The notes under the pieces are model-generated. The model made no database searches and was not told the DNA's origin. It worked only from the letters and a program-made list of their open reading frames with translations. Shown piece after piece: positions 10,202-55,346 of a stretch of 64,000 nucleotides of DNA. The first letter of the stretch is position 1; each line of letters opens with the position of its first letter. The DNA is taken from the sequence record OQ992561.1. The stretch is one strand, 5' to 3'. The position numbers were made by a program, and so were the translations under genes.

Positions 10202-12445
10202 ATGAGCGTACATGCCCTAAGAGAACTGTTTAAACACAAAGGCGAAAAGAATTACGAAGTCTTCTCAATGGAAGATTTCATTGGCCGCCTAGAAAGTGAA
10301 ATTGGTCTAAATGACAGCGTTGTTAGTCAAGGTCGTTCCCTTATTAGCAGCATTTCACATGAAAACTTCGGTACCGTGCAAGCTACCGACATTCAAGATG
10401 CCGCTGCAATTTATAACAAAATGCAAATGCTCGTTAACGACTATGGTTTCGAACGAGTAAGTTCCAGTGATCCTCAAGTACGTGCTCGTGAAGAACGTGT
10501 CCGTGAGAACCAAATCACTGCTGCTACCATGGCTGCTATCGCCTGTGCTGATGAAACTAAATATATCCGTGCACTACGTGGTATTACCAAAGCTAAAGCT
10601 TCTAATGAAGATCATGTTAAGGTTGTACAGCATCAGTTCAATGGCCCTGCTGGTGGCATTCAAGTATTCGAAAATGGTGTTGGCCTAGAGAACTATAACG
10701 AGAAGTCACAGCGTGATTTCCGTGTTGTAACTATTGGTTATAACCTAGCTGCTAGCCGTCAGGATGAATTCGCTGAGCGTATCTATCCGACCACCGTTAT
10801 CAACCCGATTGAAGGTGGTGTTGTTCAGGTTCTTCCTTACATCGCTGTAATGAAAGACGTTTACCACGAAGTATCCGGCGTTAAGATGGATAACGAAGAA
10901 GTGAACATGGTAGAAGCCTATCGTGATCCTTCCATCCTCGACGACGAAAGCATTGCACTAATTCCTGCCCTAGATCCGGCTGGTTCCAATGCTGACTTCT
11001 TCGTAGACCCGGCTCTTGTTCCTCCGTACACCATCAAGAACGAGCAGAACCTAACTATCACTACTGCTCCGCTAAAAGCGAACGTACGTCTTGATCTAAT
11101 GGGTAACTCCAATGCTAACCTACTCATTCAGCGTGGCATGCTTGAAGTTTCTGACACCATTGATCCGGCTGGTCGTCTAAAGAACCTATTCGTTCTACTC
11201 GGCGGTAAAGTTGTTAAGTTCAAGGTTGACCGTCTACCTCGCGCTGTGTTCCAGCCCGATCTAGTTGGTGATACCCGGAACGCAGTTATCCGTTTCGATA
11301 GCGATGACCTTGTTGTTAGTGGCGATACCACTTTCATCGACGGTTCAGCTGATGGCGTTATTAACGACCTTAAGACTGCTAAACTAAGCCTACGTCTAAG
11401 CGTTGGTTTCGGCGGTACTATCAGCCTATCCAAAGGCGATTCTAAGTTTGGTGCTACCGACACTTACGTCGATAAAGTTCTAAACGAAGATGGTCAAGTA
11501 ATGGATAATGCTGACCCGGCTGTTAAAGCTATTCTAGATCAGCTAACTGACCTAGCTGTTATCGGTTTCGAACTAGATACTCGCTTCACCAACACCAACC
11601 GTCGTCAGCGTGGTCACCTACTACAGACCCGTGCACTACAGTTCCGTCATCCGATCCCGATGCACGCTCCTGTAACTCTACCGATGGACACCATGACCGA
11701 TGAAGGTCCGGGTGAGGTTGTTAAAGCTCTAACCGTTAACACCAACATCCGTAACAGCAACAACGCTGTTAAGCGCATGCTTAACTACCTTGCTCAACTA
11801 CGTGAAGTTGTACACAATGGTTACAACCGTCCGAAGTTTGGTATCATCGAAGGTGCACTATCCGCTGTAATGCGTCCGACCTATCGTTACAAAGAACTAG
11901 ATCTTGAGAAAGTCATCGACACCATCAAGTCTAAAGATCGTTGGGACGACGTTTGCGCTGCGATCCTAAACTGTGTTAAAGCTGAGCTATTCCCGGCTCA
12001 CCGTGATTCCAACATTGAAGCTGCCTTCCGTGTTATCTCCGGTAACCAGGATGAAACTCCGATGTATCTCTTCTGCTCCGACAAAGAGATTGCTAACTAT
12101 CTAATGACTAAAGGTGACGACCGTACTCTAGGTGCTTATCTCAAGTACGATATCGTTTCCACCAACAACCAGCTATTCGATGGTAAGCTAGTTGTAATTC
12201 CGACCCGCGCAGTACAACAAGAAAACGACATCCTCTCCTGGGGTCAGTTCTTCTACGTATCTACTGTTATCGCTGACCTACCGATCACCCGTGGTGGTCA
12301 CCAGGTTACTCGCGAAATCGCGGCCATTCCGTTCAACCTACACGTCAACAACATTCCGTTCGCACTAGAGTTCAAGATCACTGGCTTCCAGAAAGTCATG
12401 GGCGAAACTCAGTTCAACGGTAAGCTTGCTGATCTTAAGCCGTGA
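10202..12445 (+). CDS. gp120: Major capsid protein (precursor)
   Basis: 747 aa, strong codon bias (CTA/CGT/GGT/GCT); GLE at residues 161-163 fits the known prohead-protease cleavage after E163; TGA stop. Confidence 0.95.
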   Translation: MSVHALRELFKHKGEKNYEVFSMEDFIGRLESEIGLNDSVVSQGRSLISSISHENFGTVQATDIQDAAAIYNKMQMLVNDYGFERVSSSDPQVRAREERVRENQITAATMAAIACADETKYIRALRGITKAKASNEDHVKVVQHQFNGPAGGIQVFENGVGLENYNEKSQRDFRVVTIGYNLAASRQDEFAERIYPTTVINPIEGGVVQVLPYIAVMKDVYHEVSGVKMDNEEVNMVEAYRDPSILDDESIALIPALDPAGSNADFFVDPALVPPYTIKNEQNLTITTAPLKANVRLDLMGNSNANLLIQRGMLEVSDTIDPAGRLKNLFVLLGGKVVKFKVDRLPRAVFQPDLVGDTRNAVIRFDSDDLVVSGDTTFIDGSADGVINDLKTAKLSLRLSVGFGGTISLSKGDSKFGATDTYVDKVLNEDGQVMDNADPAVKAILDQLTDLAVIGFELDTRFTNTNRRQRGHLLQTRALQFRHPIPMHAPVTLPMDTMTDEGPGEVVKALTVNTNIRNSNNAVKRMLNYLAQLREVVHNGYNRPKFGIIEGALSAVMRPTYRYKELDLEKVIDTIKSKDRWDDVCAAILNCVKAELFPAHRDSNIEAAFRVISGNQDETPMYLFCSDKEIANYLMTKGDDRTLGAYLKYDIVSTNNQLFDGKLVVIPTRAVQQENDILSWGQFFYVSTVIADLPITRGGHQVTREIAAIPFNLHVNNIPFALEFKITGFQKVMGETQFNGKLADLKP

Positions 12446-12526
12446 GCTGGAAAGGGTTACCGTTATCTAGAAAATGGGACTATCCGTTATTTGGAAGACG
12501 GTAATGCCCGGAAGTTAGAAGAGTAA
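12446..12526 (+). other. In-frame 26-codon extension of major capsid protein beyond TGA (putative readthrough tag)
   Basis: Hand translation AGKGYRYLENGTIRYLEDGNARKLEE-TAA; matches C-terminus of 37621-38154. Confidence 0.8.
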
Positions 12527-12535
12527 CAGACATAG

Positions 12536-12555
12536 GCCCTCCCTTCGGGGAGGGC
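12536..12555 (+). terminator. Capsid operon terminator
   Basis: GCCCTCCC-TTCG-GGGAGGGC-TTTAT; identical to 44866-44885. Confidence 0.9.
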
Positions 12556-12590
12556 TTTATGTTGTATTACATTAAAAAAAGTTTAAGATC

Positions 12591-18752: not shown

Positions 18753-19196
18753 TTAACTACTTTCAAATTCAAGAGTTACTGGTATTGTTGGTATCCACGA
18801 CAAGTTATTAAAGTATGGATGTATCGTAACCGTATTCCCAGTAATAGGTTGCGGTTGTATCTCATCTATAATAAATGGAATACCGTAAACATCTCTTAAT
18901 TTTTCAGCTACTTCTAAATTATCAGTATAGTCAGTTGGTTTACCCGGTACTTTTATACCAAGACAGTACTCTGGTAAAGAGCGTCTATTAAAGTAAATAA
19001 CTGTCTCACCTTTAAAATAAAGTGAACTGGTCTTCGCTCTCATTGTTGTTTTGGCATTTGTACCAGTTGCTAAGAATGTATCAGTCCCTATAAATTCAAC
19101 ATCATCAACAGTTAAATCCCTAGGCTTACCATTATTATCTTTAGGTTTATTAGCCACATTCCAAGCAGCTACTAATTCAGCTCTTGTATCAGCCAT
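18753..19196 (-). CDS. Virion structural protein (paralogue family with YxR[RL] motif)
   Basis: 147 aa; IYFNRRSL motif; gp126 by counting. Confidence 0.7.
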   Translation of the reverse strand: MADTRAELVAAWNVANKPKDNNGKPRDLTVDDVEFIGTDTFLATGTNAKTTMRAKTSSLYFKGETVIYFNRRSLPEYCLGIKVPGKPTDYTDNLEVAEKLRDVYGIPFIIDEIQPQPITGNTVTIHPYFNNLSWIPTIPVTLEFESS

Positions 19197-19204
19197 TACA
19201 CACC

Positions 19205-20080
<876 letters not shown>

Positions 20081-26409: not shown

Positions 26410-28725
26410 ATGGCCCACGGTGAAACTGGGTTATATCCATTCGACCCCAATGGAACAAATCCCCAGAACTTTATTAAAGGTGAGCGCCAAACTCTCCAGG
26501 TACCAGATGGTGATGATTATTATTTCATTATACCATTTGCTGCACCTTTCTTTGTAGATTCATTACGACTATTTAACCCACTGACCAATCAGACTTATGT
26601 AGAAGGTGTTGATTACCTTATTGGGCATTGGTTTATTGAAGCTATGGAATCGATAGGTAGACCTATCGCTGGATCTATACGTATCATGAAGCGTTCGATA
26701 AACGCTATGATTGGTATGGATTATCGTACAATAGGTGGGCAATGGGGATTTAGTAATCAACAGATCCTGGCTGAGCTTGCACGCAAACAGTATAACCCCT
26801 TGATTCGGTCATGGGGTGCAATTGGTCCATTACCTGCTTCTTTCCCACCTTTAGAACACAATCAACCTATTGATTCATTAGTAGGTAGTAAAGAGATTCT
26901 TGAAGGTATCGAAGGTATTATAGAAGCTATCCGTGCTGCGGCTGCCGGTACAACTGACCAACATATTCGTGATTATAATAACCCACACAGGGTAACTAAA
27001 GCACAAGTTGGCTTGGCACTAGTTCCAAACTATGCGATGGCAACTGATCAACAGCATTTAGATGCTAATCGTAATGATCTATTTACGAACCCACGTGGTA
27101 CATTAGCATTAGTCAATAAGTTTGCCGTAAATCCACTTAATGCTCACATAGCGGCTAGGGGTAACGTACACGGTCTAACAGCAGCTGATATTAATTTAGG
27201 TAATGTTCCTAACTATCCAGCTGCAACACCAACTACCGCGGTAGATGTAACTAATGATTCGGTATTATTAACACCTTATACTGCATCTATTCTCTATAGT
27301 CAGATTGGTGATGCTTCTAGAATTAATGAACTAGAAGAGAAACTTGCATCACATATTAAAAACTTTAATAACCCACACGTTGTAACTGCCGACCAGGTTA
27401 ATGCATATACTAAAACACAAGTTGATCAACTACTGGCGGGACTAGGTGGTGGTGATGCTTCTACCTTTGGTGGATTAACACCTGAGCAATGGAAAGATGA
27501 ATTCCCATCATTCGGTGATATTGAAAGGATGGCAGCCGGCTATAACGCTAACTGGGATGATGCACAATTAAAGATAGATACATTGCCAGTTATTGTAGAT
27601 GATACCAGTGAATATGACCGAATGGAATTAATTCAAGGTGTCATGGCAGGTTTCCATGCTTATGCTGGATTTAATAGTTGGTGGGATTGTACAATTGTCA
27701 GAGATGACCATATAGTTCATCCTAAATCGCCAGCTAACCCTTATGTAGTTATGCCAGAGCGCTTAGGCTATGCTCAGGAATCTTGGGTATCTCACCGATA
27801 TGGTCAGTATTGGGTAGAAAATGGTGTAGCCAAGTCAGCATGTATCGATGAAACTAAAGTCGATGAGATGATACCAATTCCAGCAGAATGGACTGCACCT
27901 ATAGATGGGAATATCCCTTCAAGTATCTGGGCAAATAAAACATCTCTGTATATGTTAACAGGTAAGTTTATCTTTAGTTCAACAGGTGAATCAGCTATCT
28001 TTGAGCACCAAGATCTTTATCGCTGTGTTAAAGGTGGTGCATCTGAACTATTAGTACCTGCTGCTAATAAACCATGGGCTTTATTTACCAATACTGAAGA
28101 TACCTATCCTGGTGAAATGACAGTTGTTGTAAACATAGGTCCAGCTAGCAGTGCTGACTATGTATATACAGCTTATGGTATCCCAAGCTTCGTTAGTGCT
28201 TTTAATGATTTTGTTAACAACACAATTAAACCATTGAATCATGTTATTGATTCAATGTCAATTGGTTGCACCCACATCATCATGCATTCAATAGACCCAT
28301 TAGTTGCCTCTGAAGATTACACATCTGAATCTAGTAAAGTACATGTCATGGAAATCATCCGCAATGGTAATGATACATCCTTTACGGTTATCTCGCCATT
28401 ATGGTTCGATGGACGTGGTAACGATGTAACTGCTAATGTATATAGTAACCCAATTGGTGGTGTATCAGGATTATATACACATTACACTGTGATGTATGGT
28501 GATGGCCAAATCGCTTTCTTCGGAAATAACGATAATGGACAATGTGACGTGGATGATCATGCTGGACCATATATTCAATTGGCAGCAGGGCATAATTTCA
28601 CTGTGACAGTAAATACTTTGAATCAAGTCATGTTTTGGGGAGATTCACCTGATAACTCCTTATTATGGAATGGCAGGGGTACACGTGTGAAACATATTGA
28701 ACCAACTCCACCCACTGGTCCATAA
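26410..28725 (+). CDS. gp131: Baseplate/tail-fibre protein with C-terminal beta-propeller
   Basis: 771 aa; HxxxxxNPHxVTxxQVGL repeats; C-terminal RCC1-like GNNDNGQ...AAGHNFT...FWGD. Confidence 0.85.
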   Translation: MAHGETGLYPFDPNGTNPQNFIKGERQTLQVPDGDDYYFIIPFAAPFFVDSLRLFNPLTNQTYVEGVDYLIGHWFIEAMESIGRPIAGSIRIMKRSINAMIGMDYRTIGGQWGFSNQQILAELARKQYNPLIRSWGAIGPLPASFPPLEHNQPIDSLVGSKEILEGIEGIIEAIRAAAAGTTDQHIRDYNNPHRVTKAQVGLALVPNYAMATDQQHLDANRNDLFTNPRGTLALVNKFAVNPLNAHIAARGNVHGLTAADINLGNVPNYPAATPTTAVDVTNDSVLLTPYTASILYSQIGDASRINELEEKLASHIKNFNNPHVVTADQVNAYTKTQVDQLLAGLGGGDASTFGGLTPEQWKDEFPSFGDIERMAAGYNANWDDAQLKIDTLPVIVDDTSEYDRMELIQGVMAGFHAYAGFNSWWDCTIVRDDHIVHPKSPANPYVVMPERLGYAQESWVSHRYGQYWVENGVAKSACIDETKVDEMIPIPAEWTAPIDGNIPSSIWANKTSLYMLTGKFIFSSTGESAIFEHQDLYRCVKGGASELLVPAANKPWALFTNTEDTYPGEMTVVVNIGPASSADYVYTAYGIPSFVSAFNDFVNNTIKPLNHVIDSMSIGCTHIIMHSIDPLVASEDYTSESSKVHVMEIIRNGNDTSFTVISPLWFDGRGNDVTANVYSNPIGGVSGLYTHYTVMYGDGQIAFFGNNDNGQCDVDDHAGPYIQLAAGHNFTVTVNTLNQVMFWGDSPDNSLLWNGRGTRVKHIEPTPPTGP

Positions 28726-28737
28726 GAGGATTTAAAA

Positions 28738-29070
28738 ATGGCAGAAGTTACACGTCAAGAGATGGATGCTCAAATAAATGCTTCTATTAGTAATCAAGGC
28801 TTATTTACTAAGGCAGTCCTTAATAAATTCATAGCTGTTATTAATAGGATCAATGGGCACATTGCAGCTAGAGGTAACCCACATAATCTGCAACCATCAG
28901 ATATTGGTCTTGGTAATGTGGCTAACTATCGTCCAGCTACTAAGAAGCGTGCACAAGAAGGTTTCAATAACACTACGTACATGACTCCTAAACGGACAGA
29001 TGATTATAATCGAGTGCACATATACGGTCCACTTGCGAAATTATTTAATGACGCAGCAGACCGTCTATAA
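28738..29070 (+). CDS. Small tail-fibre-associated protein
   Basis: 110 aa with one HIAARGNPH..GLGNVAN repeat. Confidence 0.8.
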   Translation: MAEVTRQEMDAQINASISNQGLFTKAVLNKFIAVINRINGHIAARGNPHNLQPSDIGLGNVANYRPATKKRAQEGFNNTTYMTPKRTDDYNRVHIYGPLAKLFNDAADRL

Positions 29071-29086
29071 ACATCTGACCCGGCAT

Positions 29087-29115
29087 AAGAGACACAGCTT
29101 TTGGCTGTGTCTCTT
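29087..29115 (+). terminator. Intrinsic terminator
   Basis: AAGAGACACAGC-TTTTG-GCTGTGTCTCTT plus T-tract. Confidence 0.85.
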
Positions 29116-29144
29116 TTTGCTGTTTCAGTTAAAAGGTATTTCTT

Positions 29145-30533
29145 ATGTATAATCCTATTTTACAATTACCATTTGATCCATTAGGTACAAATCCAGATTG
29201 TTTCATTGGTAGTGAACCACATACTCTAGTTCAGTATCAAGGGTTCGACTATAGAATCATCAAATTATATCATGGTGGATTCTATACAAAAGGGTTAGAA
29301 GTTTATGATGGTAAATATAATCGTTTAGTTAAAGATATCGATTACATTGTTACTTATTATCATAAAGATGCTAGTGCATATGTTGGTCAAGAAATATGCT
29401 CAGCAATTGTTTTCTTAAAAACACCTAGTACACCAATAGTGTATACTTCAGCTCACATGGTTGGTGGTGACCTAGCTTTTAGTTTCACAGTTATTGATGA
29501 TTATATTAACTGGTGGAAAACAAATGGTAAACCAAAGCCAAAAGACCTTGACTACACTGGTAATGAACCATACTGGAAAGATGGTGAGTTAGTTGGTGAA
29601 CGATGGCATCTTGATACATATCAGCCTTACAATAATGAGATGGAGTGGATAACACAAGCACTCATGGCTGGCGATACAAATGGTGAAGATAAATATCGTA
29701 GTAAAGTTAAAGAGATCTATGATGAATTCTTAAAGAAATTTAATGATAGGCTAGAAAAACATATTCAAGATAAAGCCAATCCGCACAAGATCACTCCAAC
29801 TAATGTAGAACTAGGTTTAGTTAATAACTTCCCATTGGCTACTCCAGCCATTGCTCAGCTAGGTCAATCTAATGCGCATTATCTGACACCACAATTAGCA
29901 TATGGTGTATTAGATGAAATAGCTATAAAACCACTCAATGCTCACATAGCTCGTCGAGATAATCCACATAAAGTCAAAAATACACATGTACAGTCATATT
30001 TGAAAAGTGATTTCGATACACGGGTCACTGGTAAGTATTTAAAGACTGATACGGTGGCTAATACCAATATGGTTTATTATAAACCTAAAGGGCAACCTAC
30101 TGCTACTTTAATGGGTTATAGCGATCTTATTTGGTGGATGCGCAAGAACTTTGATACCGATGTGAACTTTACAGCTGGTGATGGCCAGAGTAATGTCATC
30201 AATATAAATCGGATTGGTTCTGGTACAATGGGGCAATGGAAAGCACCGCTCCGTGGGAATGGTATATTTACACATTTTGATCAATTAGCCACAGAGTATT
30301 CATTTCCGGTTAAGTTAAAGTTTTATGCACTAGGATTACAACCATCCGTGCAGGCAGCATTAGATTTCTGTAGAACTAACTTTACTAATCTAGATACATG
30401 GCCTATTGGATCTACTGTATTCTTTACTATTAAAGAACAGAAAATCCAGGCAGCTGGTAACGGATTGATTTTCGTTGATTATACTCCTAACTACGTGTGT
30501 TTCCGTTCACAAGGTGGCTGGGTAATTCCATAA
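29145..30533 (+). CDS. Tail-fibre/baseplate paralogue
   Basis: 462 aa; LPFDP.G N-terminus and NPH repeats. Confidence 0.8.
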   Translation: MYNPILQLPFDPLGTNPDCFIGSEPHTLVQYQGFDYRIIKLYHGGFYTKGLEVYDGKYNRLVKDIDYIVTYYHKDASAYVGQEICSAIVFLKTPSTPIVYTSAHMVGGDLAFSFTVIDDYINWWKTNGKPKPKDLDYTGNEPYWKDGELVGERWHLDTYQPYNNEMEWITQALMAGDTNGEDKYRSKVKEIYDEFLKKFNDRLEKHIQDKANPHKITPTNVELGLVNNFPLATPAIAQLGQSNAHYLTPQLAYGVLDEIAIKPLNAHIARRDNPHKVKNTHVQSYLKSDFDTRVTGKYLKTDTVANTNMVYYKPKGQPTATLMGYSDLIWWMRKNFDTDVNFTAGDGQSNVININRIGSGTMGQWKAPLRGNGIFTHFDQLATEYSFPVKLKFYALGLQPSVQAALDFCRTNFTNLDTWPIGSTVFFTIKEQKIQAAGNGLIFVDYTPNYVCFRSQGGWVIP

Positions 30534-30544
30534 GGATAGTTTAG

Positions 30545-31918
30545 ATGAATCCATTACTTTTACCTCTTCCATTTGATGAAACTGGAGAGAGTTATAGTAA
30601 CCGAACAAAGGGTGAATACCATTCACTAGCAAAACAGAAAGGATTCCCCTATCGCATCATTGTGATGGATAAGGGTTACTTTTATACTAAAGGAATGGTT
30701 ATCAGAGATGGTAGGCAAAATGAGTTAAATCCAGAGATGGATTATCAGTGCACTGGTATTAATCCAGAGGTAATCGAGAAGACTGGACTTGAAGCTTGTT
30801 CAGTAATTGTCATTACAAAACAAGATGTCCACGAGGATATTTACATTGATGCTCAGATGTGCGGTGGTATATACTGTAACCTTGCGCCTTCCATTTCTGA
30901 ACATGCTAATGCTCTTTTAAATAATACCCGTAAACCACATTGGTCTAATATCTTAGATATTCCTGACCAATTCAAACCTAATGGACATATGCATGCCTAT
31001 TGGGAACTTTATGGTTTTACACCTAGAGTTGTTAAGTTAAAAGAAATAACTGACTTATTAAAGAAAAGCTCATCTGACTCATATGACTCCATTTTAGATG
31101 AGTTTAAATATCAATTAAGTCTAATAGAAGCTGATCTGAATACAATTGAAGCACGGCTTACTACACACATCAATGATACCACCACCAACCCACACCAAAC
31201 ACGTAAAGGGCAGGTGGCATTAGGTAATGTTTATAACGCTGGTATTGCAACTGAAACACAAGCCAAACAACCAAATGGCGCTATCATGAATGTCTATGCT
31301 ACGCCATGGTCAATGAAGTTATCTGTTGATACCAATTATACAGTACAGTATTTAGCCCACGTTAACGATATTACCACTAACCCACACAGGGTAACAGCTG
31401 AACAACTAAATACATATACTGTTACCCAAGCTAATATTTTACTAAATCAAAAATTAGATAAAGGTAAAACAGCTAATACATCTAAACTATTATTTGGTCA
31501 AGATGTTTATAGCATGGGTGAAACGGTACGTGCTAAAATGCCTTTAAGTGTATTGACGACTGGTCGGCTAGCACCTGGCCGGATCGGTAACTCAGCGACT
31601 TGGCCAGGTCGTGATTGGACATTAATGCCTAATGGCCAATGGACACACTTTGGATTTATATTCAATCGCTTCCAGAAAACAGGGACGATGGTTCACTGGA
31701 ACAATACTAACTTCAAGTCTATCCAAGAAGCAATTGCTTTCCATAACACATACTTCTCAGATCCTGACCAATGGTGGCCTGGTTCACTAGCTATCTGCCA
31801 TTACGAGCAAGAGTTCGTTATTGGGCATGGTAATGGTACAACAGCTACTTCCTATAGGAATACTTTATTCTTACGTAAAGTGGGATCAACGTGGACCAAT
31901 ATAGGGGAACCGGCATAA
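30545..31918 (+). CDS. Tail-fibre/baseplate paralogue
   Basis: 457 aa; LPFDETG N-terminus and NPH repeats. Confidence 0.8.
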   Translation: MNPLLLPLPFDETGESYSNRTKGEYHSLAKQKGFPYRIIVMDKGYFYTKGMVIRDGRQNELNPEMDYQCTGINPEVIEKTGLEACSVIVITKQDVHEDIYIDAQMCGGIYCNLAPSISEHANALLNNTRKPHWSNILDIPDQFKPNGHMHAYWELYGFTPRVVKLKEITDLLKKSSSDSYDSILDEFKYQLSLIEADLNTIEARLTTHINDTTTNPHQTRKGQVALGNVYNAGIATETQAKQPNGAIMNVYATPWSMKLSVDTNYTVQYLAHVNDITTNPHRVTAEQLNTYTVTQANILLNQKLDKGKTANTSKLLFGQDVYSMGETVRAKMPLSVLTTGRLAPGRIGNSATWPGRDWTLMPNGQWTHFGFIFNRFQKTGTMVHWNNTNFKSIQEAIAFHNTYFSDPDQWWPGSLAICHYEQEFVIGHGNGTTATSYRNTLFLRKVGSTWTNIGEPA

Positions 31919-33309
31919 TGATTACTTTTTTACCATTAGATCTAAAAGCTAAATTGGCTTCTAATTACATTGTAGATGAGGAACACACACTCATTCAAGT
32001 TGCTAATAAAACACACCGTGTACTGATGTGTACACATGGTGGTTTCTATACAAAGGACTTTAATCTACGTGATAAGAAGACTGGTTTATCTTTAAACAAA
32101 GATCAATATAAAACAACCTACCTTTATTCACAGTTATCTGAAATGACTGGTTTAGAAGTAATGGGTATTGTTGTAGTAACTGATCCTAAAGTTAGTCCTA
32201 ATGTCCAAGTTACATATAGAGCAGTTGGTGGTTTCTTTAGTATTTCAGCATTAGAACTTAAAGCTGTTTTTGATAAACTTGAATTAGATGAATTAAGTTT
32301 CACCTGGGATGATATTATTGGTAAACCCGATGCATATCCACCTGCACCTCATGGCCATGAATATTGGCAGATTTATGGCACAGATACAATGGTAACCGAA
32401 TTAAACCGAATAGCACATGCTTATCGGGTCGGTAGAAGTGCTATGGATAATGCTGCTGATGATTATTATAAAGTTTATCTTGCTGATGCAAAAACTGCTG
32501 TAGATGATTATAGAGATCGGGTTACAGCACACTTAACTGATTATAATAATCCACATGCCGATGATCGGTTCAAGTTAATTCCACCGCTTGATAAGATATC
32601 TAACTGGGGTTTTGCTACTGAAGCTGAGTCAGTTAATAGAAATATAAATAATAAATACATGCCAATTGGTGGTATTTATCGTATTCTTAATATTGATACA
32701 TTGGCTAAACTTGCATCACATATTAAAAACTTTAATAACCCACATGTTGTCACAGCTGACCAAGTTGGATCATATACCAAACCAGTAATGGATTCTAAAA
32801 TATCTCCATTGTTAGGTATCAATGAACAAGCAGCTAATGCAACTACTATTGGTGCTACTACCAATAGTCAGGGTTATCCAGTTGCTGGAACAGGTAAGGT
32901 ATATCAGAATTTCTGGAATGATGTTCGAAAAGATATTCCAGCTGAAGAGGTAACTAGCGGTGTATTTAAATGGGGTGCATTAGGTAAAGGTAATGCATCA
33001 ATATTAAATGATCCTGAAAGATATTATCTCGCAAGCGATGGTACTTGGCAAGACTGGGTTGAAGCTTTTAAAGAGTGGAACAAAGATAAGATTAAAGCTA
33101 TTACCTTAGGCCAGGTAAATAGTGAAGCAGAAGCATTAAACACGTTAAATACGATGTTTACCGATAATACCAAATATCCTGAAGGCACTTACGCTGTTGT
33201 AGGTGTTAGAACCAATACCCCCTTTGAAGCCTATTATTACCAGCAATATGTAGCAATTAGAAATAATGGTACATGGCGTTGGATGATTCGAGCTGGAGCA
33301 CTTGTATAA
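31918..33309 (+). CDS. Tail-fibre/baseplate paralogue
   Basis: Start moved to ATG 31918 (TAATG coupling); NPH repeats. Confidence 0.8.
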   Translation: MITFLPLDLKAKLASNYIVDEEHTLIQVANKTHRVLMCTHGGFYTKDFNLRDKKTGLSLNKDQYKTTYLYSQLSEMTGLEVMGIVVVTDPKVSPNVQVTYRAVGGFFSISALELKAVFDKLELDELSFTWDDIIGKPDAYPPAPHGHEYWQIYGTDTMVTELNRIAHAYRVGRSAMDNAADDYYKVYLADAKTAVDDYRDRVTAHLTDYNNPHADDRFKLIPPLDKISNWGFATEAESVNRNINNKYMPIGGIYRILNIDTLAKLASHIKNFNNPHVVTADQVGSYTKPVMDSKISPLLGINEQAANATTIGATTNSQGYPVAGTGKVYQNFWNDVRKDIPAEEVTSGVFKWGALGKGNASILNDPERYYLASDGTWQDWVEAFKEWNKDKIKAITLGQVNSEAEALNTLNTMFTDNTKYPEGTYAVVGVRTNTPFEAYYYQQYVAIRNNGTWRWMIRAGALV

Positions 33310-37620: not shown

Positions 37621-38154
37621 ATGCAGGATATCTTTCCGTATGACATGGCATCGAGGGACGCGTTAGTAAAACTTGCGCGGGATGATTTAAAAATAAACTT
37701 CAAACCAGAAACAGTTACATTTGAAGATATGTTTTTTAGTCCAACCACGATTGAGCCTGGACGTACATTTATTGAAATGATCGACATTACTACTGGCATT
37801 AAGTACATGTTAACTTACCGTCGGTTAGATTTTGCTGATCCACGTGCTATTGGTGAAGGATCTATTCTTAAGATAGTTGGTACTTTAACACCTAAAGCAA
37901 TTGCTGAAGAAATTAACCGTTCACGAGGTTGGAAGCTTGGACCAGATGATATTTCATTTGATACAACACCAATCAATGCAACTACAGATGTTGTTCCATA
38001 CACGATAGTAGCTATGTCGAGTAGTTATGCTTACTATGGTGAATGTAATATACTAATTCAACGTATTGATGATACGTCAGATACTATCCGACTATTAGAG
38101 AATGGTGCAGCACGTTATCTAGAAAATGGTCAAATCCGTTATCTAGAAAGTTAA
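37621..38154 (+). CDS. Virion structural protein (YxRLD family) with C-terminal RxLENG triple repeat
   Basis: 177 aa; LTYRRLDF; ends RLLENGAARYLENGQIRYLES; gp143 by counting. Confidence 0.8.
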   Translation: MQDIFPYDMASRDALVKLARDDLKINFKPETVTFEDMFFSPTTIEPGRTFIEMIDITTGIKYMLTYRRLDFADPRAIGEGSILKIVGTLTPKAIAEEINRSRGWKLGPDDISFDTTPINATTDVVPYTIVAMSSSYAYYGECNILIQRIDDTSDTIRLLENGAARYLENGQIRYLES

Positions 38155-38176: not shown

Positions 38177-38998
<822 letters not shown>

Positions 38999-39203: not shown

Positions 39204-41573
39204 ATGGCAAATGCTACAGACAAAGGCAAGATCAGTCAACTGCCGGATCTAGCTACTCTTAATGATAGCGAGTATATTGAATTAATTCATACCGATGCAG
39301 CTGGTCAAGTCGATAACTATAAGTTTCTGCTGTCAAAACTACAGACTGGGGCACCCGGTCTTAGTGCGTACGAGATTGCCGTTAAAAATGGTTTCCAGGG
39401 AACTGAAACCGAATGGCTTGATTCGCTTAAAGGTAAATCTTCTTATCAAATCGCAGTCGATCTAGGCTTCGTTGGTACTGAAGAAGAGTTTATAGCATCC
39501 CTTAAAGGTGATGCTGGTAAGAGTGCATATGAAGTAGCTGTGGAAAATGGTTTCCAAGGTACTGAACAGGAATGGTTAACATCACTGCATGCAACCATGA
39601 CTGCTGAACTACTCCAGACACTCTTAAATCAACAAGGCTATACAGTTAAAGATGTACTGCGTGTAACTGGTAAGAATGGTGGATTATCATCCAACGCTGC
39701 TTTCCATAACTTTGCTTTCCTGTTTGATAAGCGTCTAAATCAAGATGACTTAACTGCTGGTGATAAAGTACCTCAGCGTATGATGGAACAAGGTCGTATG
39801 GAGGCAGAAGGTTATTCTTATCTAAAGAACGCCTCTGCACCCACTACGCAAGGTGCATTACCCGAATTACCTGAGTCTGAAATTCGTATTTATGACAATG
39901 GTGAATTCCAGATTGGTAGTTTAACTGATTACATTGCATTCAAGAATGACGGCAATATCCGTATTGTTGAAGGCGTTGATGAAACAATTGTTGATCTTAA
40001 GAACCTTCCTAAAAACGAAGGTATTAGTGGCGGTGTATTCGTCAAAGATGTACAAGCAACTGATCCCAGTCAGAACGTAGGTAGTATTGTGCGTACCCCT
40101 GATGGACACAGCGTACAGTCATGCCTATCGACTACTAGTAATGTTCGGGTTATCGTTGATGCAATAACTGGACATTCTAGTTATGTACCTAGTGTTAAAA
40201 TCAATAACGTAGATGCAGTTGTAACTCCTGGCGTTAATCCACCTATGTGGATTGCTACCGCCGATATTGATCTTGGTGCACCTACTACTGAAGGTTATGC
40301 TGATATTGTTGTAGAACACGCCGATGGGGCTAAATTCACTACTAAGGTATTAGCCGATACTCCCGCTAATATTACCAGTGCTGTATTTACTGGCGGTTAT
40401 CCGTTAGGTCAAACAGAACTTAAAGAAGATGACCTTGTTGCAATTAAAGTTGTTACTGATGAAAATATAGTAGCATACGAAATTGCTGACTTTGGTGCAC
40501 TGAAAGAAAGTAGTGGTACTGTTGCACCTACTAAAGAACTAGAGGTTACTGGTCTTTACGTAGCTGATCGTGGTAATACTACTAAGGCATATGGTTTCCG
40601 TGTACGTGTTCAGAAATCAACTGGATCATGGTCAGAATGGTTTACTTCCAGTGATGCTGGTTCCGAAGATAAAATTAACACTATGCAGTTAAACGATCTT
40701 CGCCCAGTTGTTAATATTGGTCAAGTAACTTATCCGTCTGGTCAAAGTGCTATTAAAGTAGGTGAAACTGCTACTGTAGCCAATACGGTATCTAATGCTG
40801 ATAGTGTGGTTTATTCCTCACCAAATGATCAGCTTACTATAACCAGTGCAAATGAAGCAGAAATTGCTAAGGTAGTTACTTATAAGTCAGGTACTTATAA
40901 CGACAGCACTAATAACCTATTAATTACTGCTAAACGTGCAGCTAATGGTAGTGTAGCTACAGCTACTGCTGTTGTGGCTATTGCAAATGCGGCACCTACT
41001 GCGACGGTTACCTACCCTGCTGCTCGCCTTCGTTCAGGTGGTAACTTTGGAACCCAAGTACAAAGTCATGTCATTACTTTAACCTCTACTCAGAAACTAA
41101 GTGCAGCTCCGGCCATGAATGCGCCTGGCGGTAAGTGGGCTACTGAGGATTGGAAATCTGATGCCACTGGTAAGGTATGGACACGTGCATTACTAGTACA
41201 TGACGATGATCCTAAAGGAACCTACGATTTTAACAGTGTGGTTCTAAAAGGTTTAGCTGGTGTTGAAGCTAATAGTGTAAATGGTGGTACTTACGTACTA
41301 GGTGGATTTGTATTCCGCACTCTAAGTGTGGCTGCTTGGCCGAACCGTGAAACTGATATTGGTACTGAAGTAACCAATACTGGTAAACTACGTTGCAGTA
41401 ACCTATCTAAAGGTTCTACTGGTAGCTTAAACTTCACTTATAAGGCGGATGATGCAAATCAAGTTGACACCTACACCATCAAGGATGGCAATAAGTGGTA
41501 TAACTGTGACTCAGCAAACGCTGTATCCAACACCACTGGACTGATGAAAATCGAACTTGAGGAAGTAGTATAA
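39204..41573 (+). CDS. Virion fibre protein with KISQLP N-terminal module, SAYEIAV repeats and beta-rich C-terminal domains
   Basis: 789 aa; three (G)KSAYxIAVxNGFxGTExEWLxSL repeats; gp145 by counting. Confidence 0.8.
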   Translation: MANATDKGKISQLPDLATLNDSEYIELIHTDAAGQVDNYKFLLSKLQTGAPGLSAYEIAVKNGFQGTETEWLDSLKGKSSYQIAVDLGFVGTEEEFIASLKGDAGKSAYEVAVENGFQGTEQEWLTSLHATMTAELLQTLLNQQGYTVKDVLRVTGKNGGLSSNAAFHNFAFLFDKRLNQDDLTAGDKVPQRMMEQGRMEAEGYSYLKNASAPTTQGALPELPESEIRIYDNGEFQIGSLTDYIAFKNDGNIRIVEGVDETIVDLKNLPKNEGISGGVFVKDVQATDPSQNVGSIVRTPDGHSVQSCLSTTSNVRVIVDAITGHSSYVPSVKINNVDAVVTPGVNPPMWIATADIDLGAPTTEGYADIVVEHADGAKFTTKVLADTPANITSAVFTGGYPLGQTELKEDDLVAIKVVTDENIVAYEIADFGALKESSGTVAPTKELEVTGLYVADRGNTTKAYGFRVRVQKSTGSWSEWFTSSDAGSEDKINTMQLNDLRPVVNIGQVTYPSGQSAIKVGETATVANTVSNADSVVYSSPNDQLTITSANEAEIAKVVTYKSGTYNDSTNNLLITAKRAANGSVATATAVVAIANAAPTATVTYPAARLRSGGNFGTQVQSHVITLTSTQKLSAAPAMNAPGGKWATEDWKSDATGKVWTRALLVHDDDPKGTYDFNSVVLKGLAGVEANSVNGGTYVLGGFVFRTLSVAAWPNRETDIGTEVTNTGKLRCSNLSKGSTGSLNFTYKADDANQVDTYTIKDGNKWYNCDSANAVSNTTGLMKIELEEVV

Positions 41574-44500
41574 TGGCTTCTGCATTTGAAGATTATGTAA
41601 ACGGGGAACTCCCCAAACGGGTATCATCAATTGATGAACCCACTTCTGTAGTTAATGGACACATCCCGGTTTCTACCGGGGTGGGTCTTAATACCACTTT
41701 CGTTGATCCTGTTACTATACCTGGATTAAAGGGTGAAGATGGTCAGCCGGGTAAAGATGGCGATCAAGGTCCCCCTGGCCCAGTTGGTCCGGCTATTAAC
41801 ATTATCGCTAATGTTGATCTAGCAACATTCGAACAAGATATTAAACCATTAGATACGCATAATGTCGGTGATGCTTGGTTCGTTGAAGATCGGCTATGGG
41901 TATGGGAATCACCGCTAGGTAATGAAGATCCCCCTGTAAAAGGTCGTTGGGTTGAAACAGGTTCACTTCGTGGTCCAGATGGTACTGGTCTGGTTATCCG
42001 TGGTCGTTGGCCTAATAACTTAGAATTACCTAAGACTGAAAGTAATAAACCTGGAGATGCTTACTCATGGAATAATCAACTCTGGGCGTGGATGCTTATC
42101 TCAGGTAATAATCCGCCAGAGAATCCAACTATTGATGACTATGATTGGTTCCCAGTTACACCACAGGGTGAACGTGGACCTGAGGGCCCTGAGGGTCCGC
42201 AAGGTAAAGATGGTGAAATTGGTCCTGAAGGTCCTCAGGGTGAACCAGCAATGCCGTTTACCATTAAGGATTCACTACCATCACCAGCTGATTTACCTGA
42301 TCCATCTGTAGCTAAAGAATCAGAAGCATACTTAGTTACTATGGAAGCTGGTAAACCAGAACATCTATTCATCTTTGTAAAAGGGGCATGGTCAGACCTA
42401 GGTACTTTCCAAGGCCCTGAGGGCCCACAAGGTAAACCAGGTAATACAGGTGATCCGGGTCACGATGGTAAACAAGGTGAACCTGGTCCACAAGGTCGTA
42501 ACTTAGAAGTAGTTAAAGCAGTTGAAACTGCTGATGATCTATTAACCACCACTGGTGTAGAACAATACCAAGGTGTTTCAGTACGTTCCACCAATACGGT
42601 TTATGTACTGACTGGCCAAGATCCGACTGTTGATATCTCATGGACAGCCATGGGTTCATTCCGTGGCCCGCAGGGCCCTGAAGGTCCGCAAGGTGAAGAT
42701 GGCGAACAAGGTCTACCTGGTGAACCAGGGGCACAAGGTAAATCGGCTTTCCAAGTAGCATTGGACAATGGCTTCACTGGTACTGAGGGTGAATGGTTAA
42801 TCAGTCTACATGGTAAGAACGTAGTTATTACTGGTGCTGTTGCCAATGAGGCAGCCCTGCCGGCAGATGCTCCTGATCAGGCAGCGTACTTCACACAAGA
42901 CACATCTACCTTATTTGTTAAGATAGATGGTAATTGGGTAAATAGTGGTACACATCGAGGTCCTAAAGGTGAAGATGGCGCACCTGGTAAAGACGGTGAT
43001 CAGGGACCAGAAGGACCCGAGGGACCAGAAGGCCCACAAGGTCCCGCTGGTGAACCTATCCAGATCATCGCAGCGATTGACACTCCTGAAGATACCCCAC
43101 CAGAAGCACTTGCCGATAACCAATGGAAAGCATATACTGTTAAGTCCACGGGCGAAGTATTTGTTAACATGGACGGTAGTCGCTGGACTAGCATTGGTAT
43201 TATGGCAGGTCCGCAAGGTAAACCGGGTGAAGGTTTAAACATTAAAGGTGTTTTAACCGATGCTTCACAACTACCAAAGAAAGACACTGATCCTGACTTA
43301 GTAACTGGTGATTCATACTGGGTTGAAACTAACGAAGGTACAATGCTCTATACTTACCAAGGTCAGGAAATTGATGGCTATATCGGCCCAATTAATCTAA
43401 ATGGTGAGCAGGGTATCCAGGGTGTCGAAGGCCCACAAGGTCCTGAAGGTAAACAAGGTGGTGGTCTATTAATTATCTATGTTGGTGATGATGCTGGTAA
43501 ACCAGTAGCATCTGCTGATAACGTAGGTAAAGGTATTGCCATTCGCACCAATACTGAAGGACAAGTAGAAGTATTTGTAAGTATCGATACTGAAGGTACA
43601 TTTACTTGGGAAAGCCTAGGTGTCTTAGCCATGGGTCCGCAGGGTCCTGAAGGTCCTGAGGGCAAACAAGGTGTTCCAGGTATCCCTGGTAAAACCGGTC
43701 AGAAAGGTGAACGTGGATCCTCTTGGGTAATTCTACCTGAAGGTCAAACTGCACCCACTTCTATCGATGGTAATCGTGGTGACTGGTGTATCGACAAAAC
43801 TGGTACCGTTTGGTATAAAGATGCTAACTGGGTTGTATTCTACAAATTAATGTCAGTTCCAGTTAGTGAAGTCGATCCAGAAGATGTCGATAAGAAAATG
43901 GTTCGGTACAAACTCGGTTGGACTGAACTACCTGTTGATGAGGTGGTAGATGCTGAAGTAGGTGTCTTCTATGGTCGCCGTAAAGCAACCGCTGACGGGG
44001 CTGTTGAATGGACTGCTATTGAATTACCAACACCTGCCATTGATGCTGTACCTAGTCCAGTTGTTAATGCACAATACGTTCGTAAAGGTATTGCAGGGGG
44101 TGAAACTGAATGGGCTACCATTACATTCCCAGAAATTCCTTCAGATGTAGTACGCGATACTGCACAAGCTACTAAGCCTCAAGGTCGTGTAGCTGGTAAC
44201 TGGGTTGATGTAGCACCTCTGCAAACCGATGATACTCTAATGGGTATGCAAAATGGTGAATGGGTAGCTGTACCAGCCGCAGTTATTGGTGAAGTACCTA
44301 GTGAAGGTGCTAATGGCACTAACTATGTACGTGAGAAAACAGCTAGTGGTTCTAAATGGACACCTGTAACTATTATAGTTGATCAAGCTGATGCTACTAG
44401 TGGACAACTATTCCTACGTAATGCTGCGGCTAAATCATGGACTCTATTCCAAGGGCCGAATAATGATGTAACCGCTGATGGTGATTGGCTACGTAGCCGT

Positions 44501-44854
44501 ACTGGTACTAATATTACTTGGAAGAAGCTAGATAAATCATTCGATGCATATAGCCTAAAATCAAGTACATTCACTGGTACAGCTCTGACTATAACACCTG
44601 CTAACCAGCAGTGCTATAGGGTTCAAACTGCTGCTAACCAAACCATTACACTAGAGAATGGACCTGTTGATCGCATGATCACAGCTGTTCTTGTATTGCT
44701 TGGTAAGGTAGCTATGCCAACACTGTCTAGTGCAGTGCTACAGTGGAACAATGGTACTCCAGTAATAGTAGATGACCTAGGTGATACTAAAACAGTTCTC
44801 ACCCTCTTATGGGATGGTACTAACTGGATAGTTTCCAAAGGTGCTGTTATTTAA
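41573..44854 (+). CDS. Collagen-like fibre protein
   Basis: 1093 aa; repeated G-X-Y blocks (GPEGPQG) separated by globular repeats; TAATG coupling; gp146 by counting. Confidence 0.85.
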   Translation: MASAFEDYVNGELPKRVSSIDEPTSVVNGHIPVSTGVGLNTTFVDPVTIPGLKGEDGQPGKDGDQGPPGPVGPAINIIANVDLATFEQDIKPLDTHNVGDAWFVEDRLWVWESPLGNEDPPVKGRWVETGSLRGPDGTGLVIRGRWPNNLELPKTESNKPGDAYSWNNQLWAWMLISGNNPPENPTIDDYDWFPVTPQGERGPEGPEGPQGKDGEIGPEGPQGEPAMPFTIKDSLPSPADLPDPSVAKESEAYLVTMEAGKPEHLFIFVKGAWSDLGTFQGPEGPQGKPGNTGDPGHDGKQGEPGPQGRNLEVVKAVETADDLLTTTGVEQYQGVSVRSTNTVYVLTGQDPTVDISWTAMGSFRGPQGPEGPQGEDGEQGLPGEPGAQGKSAFQVALDNGFTGTEGEWLISLHGKNVVITGAVANEAALPADAPDQAAYFTQDTSTLFVKIDGNWVNSGTHRGPKGEDGAPGKDGDQGPEGPEGPEGPQGPAGEPIQIIAAIDTPEDTPPEALADNQWKAYTVKSTGEVFVNMDGSRWTSIGIMAGPQGKPGEGLNIKGVLTDASQLPKKDTDPDLVTGDSYWVETNEGTMLYTYQGQEIDGYIGPINLNGEQGIQGVEGPQGPEGKQGGGLLIIYVGDDAGKPVASADNVGKGIAIRTNTEGQVEVFVSIDTEGTFTWESLGVLAMGPQGPEGPEGKQGVPGIPGKTGQKGERGSSWVILPEGQTAPTSIDGNRGDWCIDKTGTVWYKDANWVVFYKLMSVPVSEVDPEDVDKKMVRYKLGWTELPVDEVVDAEVGVFYGRRKATADGAVEWTAIELPTPAIDAVPSPVVNAQYVRKGIAGGETEWATITFPEIPSDVVRDTAQATKPQGRVAGNWVDVAPLQTDDTLMGMQNGEWVAVPAAVIGEVPSEGANGTNYVREKTASGSKWTPVTIIVDQADATSGQLFLRNAAAKSWTLFQGPNNDVTADGDWLRSRTGTNITWKKLDKSFDAYSLKSSTFTGTALTITPANQQCYRVQTAANQTITLENGPVDRMITAVLVLLGKVAMPTLSSAVLQWNNGTPVIVDDLGDTKTVLTLLWDGTNWIVSKGAVI

Positions 44855-54395: not shown

Positions 54396-55346
54396 ATGCG
54401 TAGATTCACTCTTAATCTGGCGGATAACCCGCGTGGACAAGATCCACGAATAGGTTTCTTCAAAGCAGTTACAACAGCATATCCGGATTTAGGTTTATCT
54501 GAAGATAAGTCCATTATCGTAATGGTAATGGATAGTGCAACTATCGATGAGCCTAATAGGGCATTTGTTCGTATTCAAAAAGATGCAACTAATAGTGCTG
54601 TTTATTACGACTTTCTTTATAATCGTTTTAATGTTAATGATTATATTAAAAATCCATATTGGACAGCATCGGAAGTAACGGTTGTTCAAGGATTAAAAAA
54701 TAGCGAAGCTTTAGTTGCGTATGTTGCTAATAAAGCTAAATTAAATTTTACTGCTAGTGACATATGGTTAGAAATATCTAATATAACGTATACCGGTGGT
54801 AAGAAACAACCAAACTTTTTATTTAAAGCTATTGATTCATCACTATGGTGGAGAGGATGGTTAAATCTATGGTTACATTCAGGTGGTGATGTTGACCCTG
54901 ATCCGCCGGACCCAGATCCAGATCCTGATCCAGAACCAACAGATGGCTATCAGATATTCCCGCAATTGCTTGTACCATTTACAATTACAGTTGATAATGA
55001 AACAGGTAAATTTGGTAATTGGATTTGTCCGCCTTATGATCAAGCTATAGGTAGGCTATTGGTACTAATGCCTAAACCAGATGATGCTCAAATAGCAGAG
55101 TCACCTAAAGGTGTTATACTACCTTCTGGCAATAGCGAGAAACTTAAGGCTGGTGCTGAATATCGAATACTGAATTTAACTAATGAAGATGTTGATATAG
55201 CTACTGCTTATCAACAGAGTATCATTAGGCCAATGTATACAAGTACTGGTTTCTTACCTAATAATGGCTATACTCGATTTATCTGTTATAATGAAACAAC
55301 TAAAGCGATGTATACACTTGGTCTGTCATGGTGGATGCAATCATGA
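54396..55346 (+). CDS. Structural protein: YxR-family N-domain, PD linker, fibre-like C-domain
   Basis: 316 aa; FLYNRFNV; PDPPDPDPDPDPEP linker. Confidence 0.7.
   Translation: MRRFTLNLADNPRGQDPRIGFFKAVTTAYPDLGLSEDKSIIVMVMDSATIDEPNRAFVRIQKDATNSAVYYDFLYNRFNVNDYIKNPYWTASEVTVVQGLKNSEALVAYVANKAKLNFTASDIWLEISNITYTGGKKQPNFLFKAIDSSLWWRGWLNLWLHSGGDVDPDPPDPDPDPDPEPTDGYQIFPQLLVPFTITVDNETGKFGNWICPPYDQAIGRLLVLMPKPDDAQIAESPKGVILPSGNSEKLKAGAEYRILNLTNEDVDIATAYQQSIIRPMYTSTGFLPNNGYTRFICYNETTKAMYTLGLSWWMQS

Follow-up and report, generated by a model that had tools for sequence, protein, structure and literature searches.

A three-unit peptide tag at the end of gp143 and behind the capsid stop codon of phiKZ-type phages: a candidate docking site for fibres

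The gene for gp143 of a phiKZ-type jumbo phage ends in a short stretch of DNA that recurs behind the stop codon of the major capsid gene. Why should the end of one protein be encoded a second time, in a place where translation would normally have stopped? A sequence-only reading of this DNA had proposed that a single short beta-hairpin tag is displayed at two locations on the virion, constitutively on gp143 and at low stoichiometry on the capsid, and that it recruits a common ligand. The questions that follow are whether the likeness of the two sites is real, whether the second copy is translated, and what such a tag might bind.

The DNA analysed, hereafter the window, is a stretch of 64,000 nt from a phiKZ-type jumbo phage of Pseudomonas aeruginosa. 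The stretches tested match phage ANB1 at 100% identity and phiKZ at about 99%. The names of the window ORFs were assigned by alignment to the phiKZ record.

Two copies of a three-octad tag

The features on which the argument turns are the following.

37621-38154, plus strand: gp143 gene, 177 amino acids; an N-terminal body of DUF7941 fold followed by the tag; listed in records as a virion structural protein, with a published role as lysis regulator
38089-38151, plus strand: C-terminal tag of gp143, octads RLLENGAA, RYLENGQI and RYLES; the stop codon is at 38152-38154
10202-12445, plus strand: gp120, major capsid protein, 747 amino acids; TGA stop at 12443-12445
12446-12526, plus strand: capsid extension of 26 in-frame codons and a TAA; second copy of the tag, a predicted readthrough product
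12534-12557, plus strand: intrinsic-terminator hairpin, 3' of the extension and not directly 3' of the capsid stop, as in relatives
38216-38998, plus strand: gp144 endolysin, between gp143 and gp145
39204-41573, plus strand: gp145, 789 amino acids, fibre-like; candidate ligand of the tag
39228-39287, plus strand: N-terminal K-I-S-x-L-P module of gp145, residues 9-28, by profile match (hmmsearch)
41573-44854: gp146, by alignment to the phiKZ record

The 17 nt at 38113-38129 are identical to those at 12461-12477, as had been claimed, and identity between the two copies extends to 30 of 36 nt (repeat family D8). The synonymous differences that had been pointed out are real (GGT/GGG for Gly, CTA/TTG for Leu); the remaining differences alter residues (Q/T and S/D). 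Both sites code for three tandem octads in frame. The C-terminus of gp143 reads RLLENGAA-RYLENGQI-RYLES-stop, and the frame past the gp120 TGA reads AGKGY-RYLENGTI-RYLEDGNA-RKLEE-stop. A search of the window in all six frames for the motif R-x-L-E-x-G found these two sites only, and tblastn with the 26-residue peptide finds two sites per phiKZ-type genome.

The exact 17-mer is by itself weak evidence, because 13 direct repeats with an exact 17-mer occur in the window against 0.4 expected, most of them terminators or parts of paralogues. What lifts the match above chance is the shared reading frame, the three-unit layout, the end of the protein after the third unit, and conservation in relatives. 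On these grounds the match between the two tags is real.

The window also contains GC-rich terminator hairpins that are nearly identical to one another and have TTTATG directly behind them, at 622, 7880, 12536, 44866, 50132, 59760 and 63521; this hairpin family (repeat families D4, D7 and D9) marks the ends of transcription units. The fibre paralogues gp131-135 (26961-32793) carry coding repeats of the form H-x-x-x-F-N-N-P-H-x-V-T (families D5, D6 and D15). A 31-nt stretch, 17 nt of it exact, is common to 38260-38290 and 39611-39641, where it codes for the N-terminal region of gp144 (LQTLLN..GY) and for residues 136-146, approximately, of gp145.

A database search with gp143 returned 54 relatives, 51 of which were aligned with the window protein to give 52 sequences, down to 32% identity. 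The tag is present in 52 of 52, so that in no orthologue is it missing or unconserved, and in all full-length relatives three units close the protein, no more than a few residues before the stop. Fifteen columns of the alignment are invariant; five of these are the Arg and Glu of the tag units, and two tag glycines are nearly invariant. The conservation at the protein level that had been read from the synonymous changes thus holds throughout the family, and the tag is almost certainly functional as protein. Among cultured phages the carriers are Pseudomonas chimalliviruses only: phiKZ, PhiPA3, PA1C, 201phi2-1, Phabio, Psa21, Noxifer, Viktualia and RVTF4.

Each octad begins with Arg, followed by two residues that are mostly hydrophobic or Thr, then Glu, Asp or Asn, Gly, and two variable positions. 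Asn-Gly and Asp-Gly are classic tight-turn sequences. An AlphaFold2 model of gp143 has a mean pLDDT of 90, with 75-85 in the tail, and there it pairs short beta-bridges every 8 residues, one per repeat. The turns and the bridges together make a three-stranded beta-meander a reasonable structure for the tag, which probably folds in this way, with Asn-Gly/Asp-Gly turns; the model agrees with the hairpin proposed from the sequence. No match was returned by a Pfam scan with the two 26-residue tag peptides, a PDB profile search with 37 tags gave nothing meaningful and no chain containing the tag, and a full-text literature search for tag strings gave only noise.

Tags within one genome are no more similar to each other than tags across genomes (p = 0.94), and thus there is no signal of co-evolution between the two copies. 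In phiKZ the two copies are unusually close to each other, at rank 5 of 196, which a local conversion event may explain. Five genomes have the tag on gp143 and lack the capsid extension, the capsid gene ending in TAA. The gp143 tag is therefore the wider feature of the two, and on this distribution it is probably the older.

Tag carriers and the fibre module in unrelated phages

IMG/VR was scanned with a degenerate DNA pattern for three units, and low-complexity arrays of Arg, Gly and Glu were removed. The three-unit tag was found at at least 120 loci before filtering and at 48 after it, with exactly three units in 48 of 48. It forms the very C-terminus of J-like/Phage-tail_3 tip proteins and of beta-helix spikes, stands at the very start of proteins about 250 residues long, or lies inside long tail proteins. 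At least five distinct, unrelated families carry it. The tag is thus far more widespread than the chimalliviruses.

In these unrelated phages, the gene 3' of the tag carrier usually opens with a conserved module of about 40 residues containing K-I-S-x-L-P; among about 42 informative loci, 24 have the start of the module within 50 nt of the stop codon of the tagged ORF. Downstream genes that bear the module encode fibre or spike proteins, and their first 40 residues replace the longer N-termini of their families. When the module was compared with the PDB, its sole relative was the N-terminus of the crAss001 tail fibre gp22 (E 0.0014). The match covers residues 28-56 of gp22, and the docked residues are 1-26.

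Five of the small proteins of about 250 residues (IMG/VR L079, L108, L112, L122 and L177) carry one or two internal two-unit copies in addition to the N-terminal tag, and in each case a fibre gene bearing the anchor module comes next on the 3' side. Such proteins may serve as dedicated adaptors.

A profile built from the non-chimallivirus modules only was used to search the window with hmmsearch. Residues 9-28 of gp145 are its one significant match among the ORFs (E 8.8e-5), and orthologues of gp145 retain the module. In the window gp145 lies two genes after gp143, and in two distant jumbo phages a gene with the module directly follows a gp143-like gene. RefSeq and PHROGs label gp145 'tail sheath'; the true phiKZ sheath is gp29 (phiKZ atlas). 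With its PHROG fibre-repeat matches and three repeats of S-A-Y-E-I-A-V-x-x-G-F-x-G-T-E (DNA repeat D10), gp145 looks like a fibre protein rather than a tail sheath. Its neighbour gp146 contains long collagen-like Gly-X-Y arrays at 41720-43700 (families D1-D3; Pfam Collagen E 2.5e-24). Both gp145 and gp146 are absent from the phiKZ atlas, and neither has any transposon insertions, while gp143 tolerates five and is dispensable. Since gp143 tolerates insertions and gp145, apparently not dispensable, has none, gp145 cannot depend on gp143 alone.

From these profile matches and gene arrangements, a common ligand for both tags is plausible, the candidate being the N-terminal module of gp145. That gp145 itself is the partner of the tag is a tentative assignment, which may well prove wrong.

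The constant number of units also suggests another way in which the tag could work. Three tags might associate with one another in a trimeric beta structure, so that gp143 forms trimers through its tail, in which one of the chains could be supplied by a rare capsid subunit with the extension, tethering gp143 to the head with no ligand at all. The units are always exactly three, some carriers, the J-like tip proteins and the spikes, would be expected to form trimers, the N-terminal, internal and C-terminal positions are those that oligomerisation motifs often take, and the AlphaFold2 monomer tail is only moderately confident. Self-association leaves unexplained, however, why the fibre module so often opens the next gene. 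It finds no structure of the motif in the PDB, and it would place a lone extended subunit in a hexamer, without partners of its own. It is an unlikely explanation, if the strongest competitor of docking to a fibre.

The gp143 protein and its relatives

Three further genes of the window bear on the identity of gp143.

19205-20077, minus strand: gp127, DUF7941 paralogue of gp143 with Y-x-R-L-D; modelled at the outer baseplate periphery
18753-19196, minus strand: gp126, DUF7941 paralogue without Y-x-R-L-D (profile and motif check)
54396-55346, plus strand: gp158, probable DUF7941-type paralogue with Y-N-R-F-N (hhalign)

Against DUF7941 (PF25613) gp143 scores 19.2 bits, below the gathering cut-off of 27 bits, which gp126 and gp127 pass as clear members of the family; several gp143 orthologues carry a precomputed PF25613 match. 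A Foldseek search of the PDB with the gp143 model gave one significant match, 9xqd_0 (E 7e-7, TM 0.58/0.67), a chain of 150 residues from the phiKZ entry for the outer peripheral baseplate. This chain should be the N-terminal domain of gp127, because the phiKZ atlas models gp127 residues 1-150 there. On the predicted model, then, the N-terminal globular fold of gp143 is that of gp127 and DUF7941. A study of phage Goslar names gp143 as a DUF7941 protein (10.64898/2026.04.21.720040), and both this membership and the lysis role discussed below are already published. The Goslar study reports that DUF7941 proteins form filaments and proposes a location at the baseplate periphery (10.64898/2026.04.21.720040).

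The sequence-only reading had gp143 share Y-x-R-L-D with the putative structural proteins at 18753, 19205 and 54396. The exact motif is found in gp143 and gp127 (19205); gp126 (18753) has none, and gp158 (54396) has Y-N-R-F-N. By profile, all three are nevertheless DUF7941-type relatives of gp143. For gp158, hhalign against the gp143 family profile gives a probability of 76% (E 2e-5, 138 columns). This protein, whose gene adjoins that of the baseplate brace protein gp157, is absent from the DUF7941 list of the Goslar paper and is, by this comparison, probably a fourth DUF7941-type protein. The earlier assignment of the tag carrier to the virion agrees with the annotation in sequence records and with the fold shared with gp127 of the baseplate periphery. 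The phiKZ cryo-EM atlas shows neither gp143 nor gp145.

This kinship allows the tag to be seen as the gp143 version of a DUF7941 linker, docking the N-terminal domain of the next protomer, with the capsid extension as a mimic that nucleates DUF7941 filaments on the head. The Goslar study lends this some substance, since it shows gp22 filaments by negative stain and predicts head-to-tail DUF7941 oligomers formed through the linker (10.64898/2026.04.21.720040), and gp143 does have the DUF7941 N-terminal fold. The linkers of gp126 and gp127, however, contain no tag-like units, which lowers the standing of the tag as a general DUF7941 linker. The same study reports DUF7941 as limited to chimalliviruses (10.64898/2026.04.21.720040), and the tag occurs in phages without any DUF7941. 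We therefore rate this possibility slightly below self-association, as rather improbable.

The genes for spanin, holin, gp143 and endolysin follow one another in a conserved order. The endolysin gp144 is also a component of the virion, in the whisker ring (PMC13250141). In plasmid assays gp143 behaves as a lysis regulator that shifts the timing of the holin, either advancing or blocking its triggering (PMC12894885). The contact with the holin is predicted to involve gp143's first globular domain and not the tail, and the paper discusses neither the tail nor an association of gp143 with the virion (PMC12894885). The tag could nonetheless serve lysis in the cytoplasm, by contact with the holin or through the turnover of gp143, and its likeness to the capsid extension would then imply no shared function. 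The altered holin triggering and the place of gp143 inside a lysis cassette of conserved order speak for such a role. Against it stand the predicted contact through the globular domain, the silence of the lysis paper on the tail, the annotation of gp143 and its orthologues as virion proteins, and the presence of the same tag on the tail proteins of phages whose lysis genes are unrelated. A purely cytoplasmic role is thus quite improbable.

The capsid stop codon and a model of fibre docking

The arrangement at the end of the capsid gene, a TGA followed by 24-30 in-frame codons with tag units and then by a terminator, is found in PhiPA3, PA1C, Viktualia, 201phi2-1, Phabio and many IMG/VR contigs. 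It was surveyed in 20 distinct lineages with capsid identities of 56-100% (L016-L042, L004 and L005 included). The first stop is TGA in all 20, and the base after it is A or G. The second stop varies, with 13 TAA, 5 TGA and 2 TAG. No lineage has a sense codon at the first stop (0/20), and in 0/20 is there a start codon ahead of the first unit, which rules out independent initiation of the extension. By comparison, 10 of 10 relatives without the extension end the capsid gene in TAA, with the terminator close behind. A global reassignment of TGA was likewise ruled out: TGA ends 9 of the 57 genes of the window, without conserved downstream frames.

The association of TGA with the extension in 20 of 20 lineages, against TAA in 10 of 10 relatives without it, points to conserved UGA readthrough. 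The locus combines what is looked for in a leaky stop, namely a conserved TGA, a conserved in-frame ORF and no start codon for that ORF, and on this comparative evidence readthrough of the capsid UGA is very probably real. The literature searched contained no report of readthrough in the capsids of phiKZ or other jumbo phages.

The extension evolves under looser constraint than the capsid C-terminus (pN/pS 0.63 vs 0.26). Most of this constraint falls on Arg, Glu and Gly, the other positions being free. A search for a SECIS-like element or other RNA stimulator past the TGA found only a weak, coding-constrained hairpin to be conserved; it has 5 bp, lies 18 nt past the TGA, is shared with relatives and is mostly dictated by the Arg and Asp-Gly codons. 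Relatives do not keep the strong hairpin that phiKZ has at 12456-12505 (-21.6 kcal/mol, z = -4.3). One metagenomic relative has, in frame behind its capsid TGA, an ORF of 203 codons with a Big_2 Ig-like domain (L031:3454-4068). This ORF suggests that the site behind the capsid TGA is used for surface display, though its ATG at the third codon means that it could be a separate gene.

That the downstream frame is untranslated, a relic or a DNA-level element whose 17-nt identity with gp143 arose by chance or by local gene conversion, would be compatible with the 13 exact 17-mers in the window, the rank of the phiKZ pair (5 of 196) and the pN/pS of 0.63, but is highly improbable, since in 20 of 20 lineages open frame, units and TGA have survived many nucleotide changes, the terminator always comes after the frame, and TAA is found wherever the frame is absent.

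With readthrough as the preferred reading, the position of the tag on the head can be estimated from the capsid structure. The C-terminal arms of gp120 (residues 728-747) form a six-helix bundle at the centres of the hexamers (PMC11297242); in the pentamers they contact gp244, on the outer surface (PMC11297242). Because the arms meet at the capsomer centre, the extension would emerge there, and we infer that it points outwards.

Considered as a whole, the tag is likely to be an attachment element. Whether it is, more narrowly, a portable fibre-docking peptide, constitutive on gp143 and rare on the capsid, is a matter on which we hold evenly balanced confidence. The tag forms the constitutive C-terminal end of gp143, it is encoded again in frame right behind the capsid TGA, and across genera both copies are kept. 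In the mechanism that we envisage, a minor share of ribosomes would read through the capsid UGA, leaving some few among roughly 1,600 capsid subunits tagged at the capsomer centre; for these two steps the conserved stop codon argues strongly. The tag may then dock the N-terminal anchor of a trimeric fibre, which in phiKZ could be gp145. Three units on a single chain may form a pseudo-threefold platform for a trimer. With such docking, gp143 would act as an adaptor linking the DUF7941/baseplate network to gp145, and readthrough would put the same fibre on the head at low copy.

Of the original proposal of one tag at two virion sites with a common ligand, protein-level conservation and a virion carrier have stood, and the capsid TGA fits the low stoichiometry; the common ligand is plausible, with gp145 as its candidate. 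More speculative, and somewhat doubtful, is the wider view that the tag is a general portable device by which a trimeric fibre can be attached to any single chain, employed here on gp143 and on a few capsid subunits, with as yet unobserved head fibres of the gp145 type aiding the capture of the host or its flagellum.

The phage phiKZ is the model of nucleus-forming jumbo phages and is used in phage therapy research, and two recent cryo-EM atlases leave gp143, gp145 and gp146 unplaced. If capsid readthrough is true, the virion contains a component not yet looked for in any structure or proteome search, and the prediction can be checked in existing mass-spectrometry data. If docking is true, as the tag is probably a docking site, the phiKZ virion would have fibres on both tail and head. 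The 21-residue tag together with the fibre N-terminus would then provide an annotation rule for which fibre joins which protein in many unrelated phages. In the literature searched, no description was found of the tag itself, of its identity with a conserved capsid readthrough extension, or of its pairing with a fibre N-terminal module.

The closest structural likeness to the proposed docking is in crAss001, in which the N-terminus of the trimeric fibre gp22 docks on a pseudo-threefold hub of THA2 and THB (PMC10172136). The gp145-type module resembles the N-terminus of gp22; however, the crAss001 hub proteins are without the three-octad tag, and the match lies just after the docked residues. 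The DUF7941 filament proteins (Goslar gp22 and gp23; phiKZ gp126 and gp127) share their N-terminal fold with gp143, which differs from them in falling below the Pfam threshold, in having no C-terminal domain, and in ending with the tag that is absent from its paralogues.

Leaky coat-gene stops are familiar from RNA viruses. In Qbeta A1 (UGA) and in the luteovirid CP-RTD, a minor capsid protein that a preprint on turnip yellows virus describes in this way, a minority of coat subunits acquire a C-terminal extension that adds a surface function. The phiKZ arrangement resembles these in that a leaky stop, here with a predicted readthrough product, ends the major coat gene. It differs in its setting, a dsDNA jumbo phage of 280 kb whose T=27 capsid has the HK97 fold, and in the extension, which in phiKZ-type phages has only 24-30 residues and is proposed to be a docking tag rather than a folded domain. 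Recoding also leads to low-copy, decorated structural proteins in T7 (10A/10B) and where frameshifts add Ig-like domains to capsid or tail proteins. The phiKZ relative that appends a Big_2 Ig-like domain at the capsid stop is reminiscent of these systems, whereas the phiKZ mechanism would be readthrough of a stop in frame 0 and not a frameshift. Finally, T4 Hoc and the head fibres of phi29 are accessory fibres or adhesins placed at capsomer centres or on the head surface, and they are separate proteins that bind to the finished shell. In phiKZ, by contrast, the capsid protein would itself contain the anchor.
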